The notes under the pieces: generated by a model
What the model was told of the DNA's origin: nothing
Databases searched by the model: none
Seen by the model: the letters and a program-made list of their open reading frames with translations, nothing else
Shown here: piece by piece, positions 19-12,871 of the stretch
Layout: each line of letters starts with the position of its first letter
Position numbering within the stretch: the first letter of the stretch is position 1
Assembly (NCBI GenBank): GCA_002269645.1
Contig: NIVC01000244.1
Span: 204,484 to 268,483 of the forward strand
Source: Macrostomum lignano
Lineage: Eukaryota
Length of the DNA: 64,000 bases
Reading direction: 5' to 3'
Program-made: the position numbers and the translations under genes

Positions 19-3000
19 CCGATCAACGTAGATAGCGGATCTGCAGTTTCTAGCTGTGAGGTCGATCGCTAGCCGACCGCCGCCCGTCGTGCTAATGCTA
101 AAGCCTATGGCGTCGTTGTATGCATCGTGGCCAGATATGAACTGCATTGGTAGATACTCCAGCCGGGATAGTGCGTTTACCAATGGGCAGACTGAAAATT
201 TGTTGAAGAAGGGCGCCCTGAGTTTTCGCAATTGAAAATGTTTAATGGGTCACTACTTTGAAGATAATAATTGAACAGCTGATCTCGCGGTCACCTGGCA
301 GGCGACTTGCTAAAGGTTGAATTGTTAAGGTTCAAGGCCATCTGTTTTAAGCAAGTCTTATCTGCTAGCTAAAAAATCTACGAGCGTATCTTCTTTCACC
401 TTCCGTCACCCTAACATTCCCATTTTGGTTCCGATGGCCCTCTGCAGCTCAGAATGCCAGAGGTTGTACAAACGTTAAATTCAATTTTTTCTTACAAGTA
501 GAAGTGAAAGTGGTTGTTGTTGGCGTTGTTTGAGTCGTAGTCTGAGTTGTAGTGGTAGTTGAAGTTGTTGGCGGTAGACAGACAGGTAAGGGACTAAAGC
601 AGCCGTTTATTGAAAGGTAGAACTGAAACACCGTAGTAGAGTTATCTGACGATTTCGGCTCCCCAGGTGCAATAATGACAGTGTGCACGTCGAAGTTGAA
701 GGTGTAACACAGCACTCCCGGCGTGTCAAGTGTGGCAGTCTCAGATTCTTTTAGCAAGGAAAATCCACCAGTCAACGCCATCCTGTAGTACAAATTTGAC
801 TGCTTCACATTGCCGCCCGTCATGCAGACCTGAAATGTTTAACGAATTGTTTTGATTATTAGCGTCCCAGAATGAAGTTTATGGAAAACATGATCGAAAC
901 TCACCGAGAAAACGTAGGTCGGCGCTCGACAGCCGTTAGCTGTCAAGTCTACTGTCAGGAATTTGCCTCTGGCAACGCTGTAGCCAGTGATAGGCGAATA
1001 AGTTCCACCCGTGATCGCCCAGGTCGGCAGATAGGCAGTTGATGATAGAACATTTTCTGACGGGCAACCTATCGGTGGACGAAAGGTTTTAGATAGGCTC
1101 TACGTGGAGTTGAAAAAAACAGTTTATATGTAAGCAGCAAAACAATAATCCTGGCCTTACGTGTCGGAACGGGAGTGGTAGTAGTAGTCGAAGTAGTAGT
1201 TGTAGGTGTTTTAGTAGTACTAGGTGTTTTCGTGGTAGTAGTAGTCGCAGTCGAGGTTGAAGTGGCAGTTGTTGGTGTTGTAGTTGTACTTGTTGTCGTC
1301 GGTGTTGTGGCAGTAGACGTCATAGTGGTACTAGTGCTAGTGCTAGCAGTGCTAGTGGTTGGTGTAGCGGTCGATGTTGATGTGGTTGGAATTTTAGTAG
1401 TTGTCGTAGTTGTAGTCGGTGTAGTTGTCATTGAAGTGGTCGGAGTAGTTGGAGTTGTAGTCGTACTGGTGCTAGTTGTGGTTGATGTAGACGGGACCAA
1501 ACAAGCACTGGGAAGTGGCGTGAAGCAGGCATCAATCCGAACAAAGAAAGCATAGTTGGTTTGTCCACGCGAGGCAGTTTTTAAAAGCAGCGGCGCAACG
1601 CCAATCCTTGCCAAAGATCGGCGCGGGTTGTAGCAAACCGGCATGTTGCTGTCTGACTCGATCATCGGGGAGTTAATGTCAATTTTCAAGTCTGAGCCGA
1701 CGGTGTCAGCGTAGAACATATTAGCAGCTCTAACGTTACCGGAAACGCACACCTAAAATCGAGTTCGATTTTATACAATTATGAATGTTCTGCGATCACC
1801 AAATACGACTAGCTCCATGTACGTTTGTTGATTTAGCCAAAAACAACTTACCCTTTCAACAAATATTGGAGGCCTGCACGAAAAAACAGTAAGATCAACT
1901 ATCAGCGCTCCGGATGCGCCGACAGTCATTATATATCCGGAGAATGTATCGTATCTGGCTCCAGTGACGGCAAATGATGGGATCAATGCGTTCTGACTAA
2001 GCCCGTCAACAAGGCAAGTTGTGGTTGTCTCTATGGTTGTTGCTGTTGTCGTTGGGGTAGTAGTTGTTGTGCTGCTGCTAGTAGAAGCTGATGTAGTTGT
2101 TGATGTGGTTGTGGTTGGTGTTGTAGTTGTGGTCGTAGTCGCAGTAGTCGGAGTAGTCGTAGTACTAGTAGTTGAAGTTGTTGGCGGTGTTAAACAAATC
2201 GAGCTCAGTGGTGTAACGCATGCTTGCAGGGAGACGTAGAACTGGTAAAACGATCCAGCTGCCCCCGGCTTTACCTCTTTAGGGGCGACCTGCACAGCTG
2301 CAGCCTGTCTATCAAGCTGATAGCAAAGCGGGGCGCCTGTGGCCGACGTAATCCCGGGAGTTCTAAAGTCCAACTGGAAGCTGTCACCGGCTGACGCCTT
2401 GATGTGAATGTTTGCGCGCTGCACATTGCCAGAGATGCAGAGCTAAAATCAAGGTTGATTGTTGAAAATTACTGACTAAAGAGCAAATTTAAACCATTAT
2501 AAGGGATTAGAAATCTAGGGTCGCTATGTGTTAGCAGATGTATCAACAGTTCAAGAGCACCATTATAGTTTTGCAACGTTTCCTCTAAAACTCACCTGAC
2601 CGATCCTAACCGCTGACCTGCAGCCAAACACGGTGAGATCAATCACCATAGCCGCTGTGTCGCTTATACGGATCGAGAAGCCTTCGAACTGCTGGTAGGT
2701 GGCGCCCGTAATTGCAAACGAAGGAAGCAGGTCAGATCGACTCATGACATCCACCAGGCAAGCTATAATTCGATAGTTTCCATGGATTACGACTCTTCAA
2801 TAACAAAAAAAAGATTTATAGGAAAAAAGATAAAACAAATGAGTGAATTCAGCCTAGCAGTGGGCACACTAGTACACTTACATGCTGTTGTCGTTGTTGG
2901 TGTTGTTGTTGTCGTCGGAGTCGACGTAGTTGATGTCGTAGTAATTGGAGCGGTTGTCGTCGTAGTAGTAGTAGTCGGTGTAGTACTTTTGGTGGTTGTT

Positions 3001-12000: not shown

Positions 12001-12871
12001 GATAGACAGCCAGCCAGCCAGACAGACAGACAGACAGACAGACAGACAGACAGACAGACAGACAGACAGACAGACAGACAGACACACAGACAGACAGACA
12101 GACAGACAGACAGACAGACAGACAGACAGACAGACAGACAGACAGACAGACAGACAGACAGACAGACAGACAGACAGACAGACAGACAGACAGACAGACA
12201 GACAGACAGACAGACAGACAGACAGACAGACAGACAGACAGACAGACAGACAGACAGACAGACAGACAGACAGACAGACAGACAGACAGACAGACAGACA
12301 GACAGACAGACAGACAGACAGACAGACAGACAGACAGACAGACAGACAGACAGACAGACAGACAGACAGACAGACAGACAGACAGACAGACAGACAGACA
12401 GACAGACAGACAGACAGACAGACAGACAGACAGACAGACAGACAGACAGACAGACAGACACAGACAGACAGACAGACAGACAGACAGACAGACAGACAGA
12501 CAGACAGATAGAAAGGCAGACAGAAAAGACTCAGCATAGTTTCTCAGCAGTCAATACTATAACTATTTAAATCTTTTTTAACCTTCTCAAGTGCCATACT
12601 CACTCTTCGAAGTAGTGGACTGAGCAGTCGTTGTCGTTGTTGCAGTTGTGCTGGTAGTAGGCGTTGTCGTTGTCTGCGTTGTTGTTGTCGCAGTGGTGGT
12701 GGTTGGTGGAGTGGTGAAGAAGTATTTGGTGGTCAGCGGCACGCAGGAGCAAAACGGCTCGGGTGCTTGGCAGGCAGCGTGCTGAACGGCACAGAGGAGG
12801 CAAGCAGCCAGAGCCACTGGGGTGAAGGCGTCAGAAGGTTCGGCTTTATAGAAACATCTTTCCGCGTTCAT
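19..12871 (-). CDS. Giant secreted mucin-like protein: signal peptide + >=13 repeats of [six-Cys discoidin/F5-8C-like domain + Thr/Ser/Pro linker]; 3' end lies outside the window
   Basis: Exons read manually using GT/AG sites and phase continuity (minus strand): 12871-12604, 11825-11227, 10881-10718, 10632-10054, 9527-9355, 9269-8804, 8702-8533, 8366-7820, 7684-6216, 6032-5481, 5138-4754, 3613-3444, 3353-2882, 2762-2596, 2442-1852, 1752-1161, 1068-905, 829-496, 191-19. Total is about 8 kb, or about 2,700 aa. The leader has a hydrophobic core [11 protein letters not shown]. Recurrent motifs: CxxVNGL..YIP..AI.G, IDL...GCR, VCL.GNV, LCY, F.....GCF..LP..C. Two exons contain 1-nt frameshifts, and a split into two genes near 3.6-4.7 kb is possible. 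Confidence 0.85.
11996..12510. repeat. (GACA)n microsatellite in the first intron of the mucin-like gene
   Basis: About 500 bp of near-perfect GACA; produces the spurious SVCL-repeat ORFs. Confidence 0.98.

Follow-up and report, generated by a model that had tools for sequence, protein, structure and literature searches.

What kind of protein is encoded by a long row of similar six-cysteine modules that alternate with stretches made up mostly of threonine? This question is raised by the minus strand at the left side of a 64,000-nt stretch of the Macrostomum lignano genome (contig NIVC01000244.1, positions 204,484 to 268,483 of the forward strand, assembly GCA_002269645.1; in the following called the window, with position 1 as its first letter). 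A first-pass annotation made from the sequence alone had read this region as a beads-on-a-string mucin and proposed a secreted component of mucus or glue. Our analysis confirmed the first part of this description, namely that the gene is of the mucin type and that its 13 divergent six-Cys modules are joined by Thr-rich linkers. For the protein as a whole we arrived at a different picture: it is probably a giant type-I membrane mucin of ~3,100 amino acids, most of whose extracellular portion is encoded here.

To delineate the array, we built a hidden Markov model (HMM) from the alignment of the 13 modules and searched all 64 kb of the window, translated in six frames, with it. All 13 copies were recovered on the minus strand between positions 16 and 11823, and no others were detected upstream of 12933 or anywhere else in the window. 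Whole or half modules matched with E-values from 2e-13 to 9e-45 and one split fragment of module 2 with 1e-08, whereas the best match outside of 16–11823 had an E-value above 4; the array is therefore far beyond chance. All 13 module starts predicted previously were found in place in our exon model and by the HMM. Nine of them (11825, 10881, 9527, 8702, 7684, 3613, 2762, 1068 and 191) are exact exon starts, at which the first Cys codon begins 2 nt further in because the introns there are in phase 1. The other four, given before as approximate positions (~6955, ~6380, ~5645 and ~2020), correspond to module starts within exons at 6953, 6380, 5642 and 2016. The motifs described as shared among the modules likewise agree with the consensus of our alignment.

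The complete modules are 133–142 amino acids long and share a pairwise identity of 24–42% (mean 34%). Their cysteines are found at about positions 1, 47, 57, 95, 131 and 139 (12 of 12 complete modules). The modules are connected by 12 linkers of 28–114 amino acids each, 869 in total, which consist of 56–75% Thr, 7–24% Ser and 6–11% Pro; an additional Thr-rich stretch is located near the N-terminus, ahead of module 1. The linkers are thus as Thr-rich as had been noted, and their range is somewhat wider than the 35–110 amino acids given before. In the linker DNA, Tandem Repeats Finder detected weak cryptic repeats only. Together with the module identities of 24–42%, this led us to reject a recent satellite or tandem repeat. 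An Rfam scan of the whole window yielded no match.

Within the window, the gene extends over 19..12933 on the minus strand and comprises 20 exons and 19 introns of 75–1140 nt, 18 with GT-AG borders and one with GC-AG borders. The coding sequence is 8,011 nt long in the sequence as given; after two single-base insertions it is free of stop codons, with 8,013 nt and 2,671 amino acids. As module 13 is cut by the window edge, the gene extends past the left end of the window. Exon 1 (12903..12933) contains an ATG at 12933 and encodes the first ten residues of the putative signal peptide, MPRRCLQTAF, which are residues 1–10 of UniProt A0A1I8G2V1. It is directly followed by an 86-nt GT-AG intron. This ATG is the likely start codon, and the ATG at 12871, where the first-pass annotation had the gene begin, is internal. 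Exon 2 (12604..12816), which ends in a phase-1 donor, encodes the rest of this putative hydrophobic signal sequence, then a short stretch containing Cys and finally the first segment rich in Thr. Judged by eye only, the N-terminus shows the basic start and hydrophobic core of a predicted signal peptide. Intron 2 harbors a nearly perfect (AGAC)n microsatellite of ~133 copies (11996..12524), which is the source of artefactual open reading frames (ORFs) with SVCL repeats.

The part of the gene beyond the window can be deduced from public models. Three UniProt entries named “Membrane-associated protein”, A0A1I8G2V1 (P0001), A0A1I8HYN9 (P0002) and A0A1I8HA14 (P0021), are automated models of the window locus. 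Blocks matching our 20-exon model exactly amount to 1,051 residues in A0A1I8G2V1 and 1,034 residues in A0A1I8HA14, with zero mismatches inside the blocks. The lengths of the public models range from 725 to 1,617 amino acids, with most linkers skipped or read in the wrong frame and several half-modules dropped. Because of these omissions the annotated length is too short, and the true protein is about twice as long, with about 3,100 amino acids in all. The gene is therefore known in the databases, but in the form of badly fragmented, uncharacterised models.

Beyond the window, A0A1I8HA14 contains the second half of module 13, ~150 amino acids of further Thr-rich sequence and a domain of ~115 amino acids. 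A0A1I8HA14 and A0A1I8G2V1 then end in the hydrophobic sequence YLTLIVLVCCLGGGFLLLLVIFIIVYAVY, followed by SRRMRSDLKQK...; in A0A1I8HA14 the hydrophobic helix has 29 residues and the tail 31 amino acids. The family member P0004 has the same layout of modules followed by a transmembrane (TM) helix, and its membrane-proximal region weakly resembles that of A0A1I8HA14. By Pfam, no VWD, C8, TIL or CTCK domains were found in the public models or in the window exons. The TM helix and the short cytoplasmic tail at the end of the public models speak against a secreted mucus or adhesive component, as had been suggested initially, and for a mucin of the cell surface rather than a secreted glue. Taken together, the protein's composition, signal sequence and TM helix suggest a long mucin of the cell surface, and we regard this architecture and its assignment to the membrane mucins as reasonably likely.

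In the proposed arrangement, a signal peptide would be followed by 13 non-identical globular beads of ~140 amino acids and a longer Thr-rich stalk, after which would come the juxtamembrane domain, then the TM helix and finally the tail. This resembles the membrane mucins of the MUC16 type, in which a repeated small folded domain alternates with O-glycosylation-type linkers and the chain ends with a domain close to the membrane, one TM helix and a short cytoplasmic tail. The comparison with MUC16 (CA125) is based on general knowledge and concerns the overall bead-linker-TM-tail design, as there is no detectable sequence relationship. The beads differ as well: a discoidin-like beta-sandwich is found here instead of an SEA domain, and the beads are old and 34% identical instead of near-identical repeats; the SEA-like nature of the juxtamembrane domain in the M. 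lignano protein is putative.

Read from the N-terminus, modules 1 to 12 each contain all six cysteines. Module 1 (11399..11823, 142 amino acids) has no internal intron and is disrupted by a 1-nt frameshift at ~11631; the following linker (10880–11398) encodes 58 amino acids and includes a 345-nt intron. Module 2 (10385..10879, 137 amino acids) is split by a phase-0 intron (10633–10717), carries a frameshift at ~10533 and is followed by a linker of 111 amino acids. Phase-0 introns are also present in module 3 (9018..9525, 141 amino acids, intron 9270–9354, then a 72-amino-acid linker) and module 4 (8121..8700, 138 amino acids, intron 8367–8532, then a 101-amino-acid linker). The next two modules are intronless: module 5 (7284..7682, 133 amino acids) precedes a linker of 110 amino acids with 75% Thr, and module 6 (6531..6953, 141 amino acids), the one for which the structure was predicted, precedes a linker of 50 amino acids. 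Module 7 (5787..6380, 137 amino acids) has its phase-0 intron at 6033–6215 and a linker of 48 amino acids, and module 8 (4878..5642, 141 amino acids) has its phase-0 intron at 5139–5480. The 42-amino-acid linker after module 8 is split by an intron of 1,140 nt (3614–4753). We considered an additional module within this 1.1-kb gap and rejected it: there is neither a coding-like frame nor an HMM match, wherefore we assign 3614–4753 to an intron.

Module 9 (3108..3611, 138 amino acids, then a 76-amino-acid linker) differs in that its internal intron (3354–3443) starts with a GC donor (GCAAGT). An alternative GT donor 9 nt upstream, used by UniProt A0A1I8G2V1, would delete the residues VDR. Since three residues kept in all other modules would be removed, the intron is best read as GC-AG. 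Module 10 (2194..2760, 138 amino acids, phase-0 intron 2443–2595) is followed by a linker of 59 amino acids, and module 11 (1501..2016, 139 amino acids, phase-0 intron 1753–1851) by one of 114 amino acids. After module 12 (578..1066, 138 amino acids, phase-0 intron 830–904) the linker of 28 amino acids holds a 304-nt intron. The first half of module 13 (19..189, 57 amino acids) contains Cys 1 and Cys 2 and ends at a GT donor (18–17). Overall, phase-1 introns precede nine modules, and nine modules share a phase-0 intron at the same position, behind the strand following G-C-R and immediately ahead of (V/I)-C-L-x-G-N-V, an intron that is missing from modules 1, 5 and 6.

How old this arrangement is became evident from a paralogous locus on contig NIVC01003964.1, which carries the paralog P0005. 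Its successive modules best match M2, M3, M4, M5, M6, M7, M8 and M9, in this order, with an identity of 46–55% at the same position, loops included, compared with ~34% between different positions. As in the window, the counterparts of M5 and M6 have no internal intron. A second M4-like module at 2813–3306 is near-identical to the in-order copy at 7501–7994, about 4.7 kb apart, and results either from a recent duplication within the locus or from an artefact of the assembly. The order M2 to M9, shared by paralogs at 46–55% identity, makes the array old, and this comparison indicates that it was assembled before the two paralogous genes split. The previous reading as an old array instead of a recent satellite is thus borne out, in line with the low identity among the modules. 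In P0005, a transcript-derived NCBI model, the homologous phase-0 intron, which corresponds to the internal intron of module 8, is spliced out exactly (ITVES|gtgagt...ttgcag|ICLLGN). As the NCBI annotation of P0005 is RNA-seq-based (PMC5730564), its splicing lends the exon structure of our model indirect support from transcripts. Our literature search found no papers on the gene identifiers of the paralogs.

We then asked what kind of domain the module represents. Modeled with AlphaFold2 on the 13-module alignment, the module is all-beta with a predicted local distance difference test score (pLDDT) of 95 and a predicted template modeling score (pTM) of 0.89. The comparison with the PDB by Foldseek yielded, in this order, IFT25, a CBM32 (a family of carbohydrate-binding modules, CBMs), neuropilin-1 b1, HSPC034, a chitosan-binding module, the CASPR2 discoidin domain, neuropilin-2 and factor VIII, followed by SUN and LN domains and further CBMs. 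All matches are sandwiches of the galactose-binding-domain-like type, with E-values from 3e-4 to 2e-2 and moderate TM-scores of 0.45–0.55; the better ones have a root-mean-square deviation of 3.4–4.1 Å over 115–136 columns. For IFT25, CBM32, neuropilin b1, the CASPR2 discoidin domain and factor VIII, the E-values are 3e-4 to 2e-3 at TM-scores of ~0.5. The beta-sandwich predicted by the first-pass annotation is consistent with these results, as the nearest solved folds include a true discoidin domain (F5/8C) as well as CBM32.

At the sequence level, the modules stand apart. Pfam gave no match for two intact modules (E-values up to 10) or for the whole public models (E-values up to 1), and none of 28 modules from the wider family matched either (E-values up to 10). 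Sequence and profile searches of the PDB with the modules found nothing relevant, in agreement with the earlier remark that the family was not recognised as a named domain. When the profile of the 28 modules was compared by hhalign with four discoidin domains, each verified end to end against the PDB, a collinear alignment of positions 1–134 with 3–156 was obtained at a probability of 2.6% and an E-value of 0.017; neither this comparison nor one with a single discoidin sequence was significant. This alignment places C1 on the N-terminal Cys of discoidins, IDL on WLQVDL and GCF on the C-terminal GC. The proposed discoidin assignment therefore stands for the fold and the terminal motifs, but not as membership in PF00754, which remained unmatched, nor by the hhalign probability.

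The similarities to discoidin and CBM32 domains are the beta-sandwich and the similar size, with the CBM32 of CpGH89 among the top structural matches. In addition, the module motif C-x-x-(V/L)-(N/D)-G-(M/L) followed by I-P-x-x-x-I resembles C-x-x-x-L-G-M followed by I-x-x-x-Q-I in discoidins, the I-D-L strand resembles W-L-Q-V-D-L, and the Cys of the last strand resembles the closing G-C. Different from discoidins, the module is shorter (133–142 versus ~155 amino acids), has four extra cysteines and lacks the signature residues Trp, Arg and Gln, and the TM-scores are only ~0.5. The protein P0020 has a canonical F5_F8_type_C domain, detected by Pfam, directly beside a module of the new type; because they occur side by side as separate units, the two are distinct families. 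Judging from the model and a few motifs, the module thus appears discoidin-like, yet belongs to a separate, unnamed family. The two-Cys relatives described below retain no cysteines other than C1 and C5 (in the GCF motif), and these align with both discoidin cysteines. The likely disulfides are C1–C5, corresponding to the N-to-C clamp of discoidins, C2–C3 and C4–C6. The automatic UniProt names of relatives refer to CUB, CysD, ZP, PKD or REJ domains, none of which has Pfam support. The CysD domains of MUC2 and MUC5AC (Pfam Mucin2_WxxW) are also small, Cys-rich globular units that break regions rich in Pro, Thr and Ser, but the fold and the Cys pattern of the module differ from them and Pfam found no match.

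To place the module in a wider family, we searched 1.84 billion representative proteins exhaustively with the HMM and obtained only 20 matches, the top ones from M. lignano. Word-indexed protein searches with the 13-module and 28-module alignments and with the C-terminal tail were empty; these negative results are uninformative, since the HMM search finds 20 proteins that are present in the same collection. Among the matches, the six-Cys subtype was found only in M. lignano. In the distant relatives, C1 and C5 are retained but the four internal cysteines are missing, and the sequences follow the pattern C-x-(L/I)-x-(D/E)-G-M ... I-P-D ... (D/V)-(I/V)-R-P ... G-W ... (I/V)-D-L-T ... G-N-V ... 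A-C-F. They include the M. lignano protein P0008, a chiton “mucin-2-like” protein, a protein of the annelid Dimorphilus and several others. The search for family members in other animals, which had been recommended, thus led to chiton and annelid relatives of the two-Cys type.

Such relatives are found within proteins that contain VWD, C8, TIL and VWC domains, the annelid protein being of the VWC/TIL type. In M. lignano, P0008, P0025 and P0026, encoded outside of the window, are gel-forming-mucin-like proteins of 3,400–3,800 amino acids with EGF repeats and VWC. The P0008 type has three VWD-C8-TIL units, and Thr-rich linkers flank the two-Cys modules near its C-terminus, of which there are at least four; in P0025 up to six matches to the module HMM were found. 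Gel-forming mucin-like proteins of lophotrochozoans have F5_F8 domains as a characteristic feature, and in hemolectin/hemocytin and these mucin-like proteins discoidin-type domains accompany VWD-C8-TIL (Lang et al. 2016, PMC4948705); the distant relatives of the module are found in such proteins. The window gene is different from them in lacking VWD, C8, TIL and VWC and in being membrane-anchored in the public models. We consider it a reasonable inference that the module descends from mucin-associated discoidin domains and that its six-Cys version in a membrane mucin is an elaboration of Macrostomum. A protein of the P0008 type is a candidate for a secreted partner of the membrane mucin.

Regarding the function, the linkers, with ~65% Thr, would be densely O-glycosylated and stiff, and the protein may form a long filament of the glycocalyx on an epithelial surface, contributing to a hydrated barrier. 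General mucin biophysics would give it a length of roughly 0.3 micrometres with the linkers extended. The beads, with conserved cores and divergent loops, could act as protease-resistant spacers and at the same time as weak multivalent binding sites. The most plausible ligands would be glycans or other mucus proteins, such as the worm's gel-forming mucin-like protein with VWD-C8-TIL units and related modules. Ligand binding by the beads is a tentative suggestion.

Several observations weigh against the interpretation as a membrane mucin with ligand-binding beads. The TM helix and the SEA-like domain are located outside of the window and come from otherwise poor automated models. Pfam detected no SEA domain in the public models. 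A single-sequence AlphaFold2 model of the juxtamembrane domain is weak (pLDDT 65), with strands and helices in the order beta-alpha-alpha-beta-beta-alpha-beta, and Foldseek returned generic ferredoxin-like matches; the MUC16-type SEA domain 1ivz reached the highest query TM-score (0.54), yet ranked 31st with an E-value of 0.058. An SEA-like fold of the juxtamembrane domain is possible. In addition, neither Pfam nor hhalign linked the modules to discoidins, no conserved surface patch hinting at a common ligand site was found across the modules, and the two frameshifts mean that the copy in the window could be defective.

This last point leads to the possibility that the window copy is a decaying duplicate, i.e., a pseudogene, of a functional gene. 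It would explain the 1-nt frameshifts in M1 and M2, which are repaired by one C and one G, and the genomic background fits: the genome shows extensive near-identical duplication, with 180 Mb of non-repetitive blocks in duplicates of at least 95% identity (PMC5730564). The three near-identical public models A0A1I8G2V1, A0A1I8HYN9 and A0A1I8HA14 point in the same direction. Against decay stand 8 kb of coding sequence that is stop-free apart from the two missing bases, residue-for-residue identity to the public models throughout the shared blocks (1,051 amino acids) and 19 of 19 introns with intact splice sites. The gaps are also situated in short runs of the same base (CC and GG), presumably a typical error of long-read assembly; the M. 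lignano assemblies are PacBio-based (PMC5730564). Because the exact-match blocks span both frameshift sites and the public models read them intact, the missing bases are either assembly errors or private to the copy in the window, and we regard a pseudogene as rather improbable. Somewhat less remote, although still unlikely, is a secreted or shed multivalent lectin-mucin in mucus or glue, with beads cross-linking glycans into a gel. The fold superfamily of the beads includes many carbohydrate-binding modules, for example CBM32, secreted VWD-C8-TIL mucin-like proteins contain related modules, and a juxtamembrane domain, if SEA-like, could permit shedding. However, the clear TM helix and the basic stretch at the end of the public models, the absence of the VWD, C8 and CTCK domains for oligomerisation and the lack of identified conserved sugar-binding residues among the modules argue against it. 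[quoted passage not shown] These are likewise large repetitive extracellular proteins of the same animal, at least Mlig-ap2 being glycosylated, but they are gland-secreted and characterized by Lys/Arg-rich repeats, a C-type lectin domain, vWD-C8-TIL and EGF domains (PMC8621496), none of which is present in the window gene; on these grounds we rejected identity with them.

More difficult to separate from ligand-binding beads is a purely structural role, in which the beads are disulfide-locked, protease-resistant spacers with no ligand of their own, like the SEA domains of MUC16 or CysD of MUC2. Among the 13 modules, conservation is confined to the strands, the cysteines and the G-N hairpin turn, and three loop regions are essentially unconserved (mean BLOSUM62 scores of −0.07 to 0.8), as expected for such spacers. 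Against this view, each position is ~50% identical in the paralog, loops included, compared with ~34% between positions, which suggests a constraint beyond keeping the fold, and the fold family is typically a binding module. Conserved cores with variable loops fit either structural spacers or beads of differing specificity, and the position-specific conservation between paralogs slightly favors the latter. We consider purely structural beads possible, but doubtful. Returning to the membrane mucin with beads of differing specificity, one may speculate further that the six-Cys module is an undescribed, Macrostomum-expanded offshoot of the discoidin fold from spiralian gel-forming mucins, which would serve as a multi-specific array tethering secreted material to the cell surface, either the worm's gel-forming mucin with its related modules or Mlig-ap1. 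Mlig-ap1 has reportedly been proposed to connect the glue to the microvilli of anchor cells through a further partner. This extended scenario is a long shot.

The remainder of the window contains several other genes. An ALKBH8-like gene (18164–22381, plus strand) is arranged head to head with the mucin gene; its exons for a 2OG-Fe(II) oxygenase (19409–20182) and an S-adenosylmethionine (SAM)-dependent methyltransferase (21566–22381) are separated by a minisatellite (20157–21326). An exon at 28892–29311 on the plus strand encodes a RING-variant zinc finger (RINGv, MARCH-type). Large exons between 44515 and 63158 on the minus strand belong to a titin/twitchin-like muscle protein, comprising an open exon of 2,073 amino acids with 13 fn3 and 8 I-set domains, another exon with fn3, I-set and protein kinase domains, and further Ig exons at 44.5–47.5 kb. 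Between the exons of this gene, on the opposite strand, lies a complete ORF of 469 amino acids (55423–56832, plus strand) for a second, unrelated mucin-like membrane protein, with a signal-like N-terminus, ~40 copies of P-T-P-x-D-P-T-T-(F/Y), a C-terminal hydrophobic helix and no Pfam match. Minisatellite arrays were found at 26963–27913, 34119–34626, 35538–37343, 41440–44487, 46583–47041, 50345–50992 and 51535–52790, the largest measuring ~3 kb (41.4–44.5 kb). The ORFs in these arrays are open in several frames at once and are therefore not genes. Simple and tandem repeats reportedly make up 15% of the M. lignano genome, and the minisatellites in the window are consistent with this.

For the mucin gene, our analysis provides a corrected model with ~2,671 amino acids in the window, compared with the 725–1,617 amino acids of the public models, and a compact, confidently foldable domain family with flatworm, chiton and annelid members that is nameless in Pfam. 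Membrane mucins are poorly known outside of vertebrates, and the biology of the flatworm surface, including mucus, ciliary gliding, temporary adhesion and the exclusion of microbes, is short of molecular parts. The protein described here would be a parallel to MUC16 in which a discoidin-like sandwich bead takes the place of SEA, in an animal that is experimentally tractable by RNA interference, in situ hybridisation and transgenesis. Should the beads bind ligands, the array would be a natural multivalent lectin scaffold; if they bind nothing, it would show which folds evolution uses to punctuate mucin rods.

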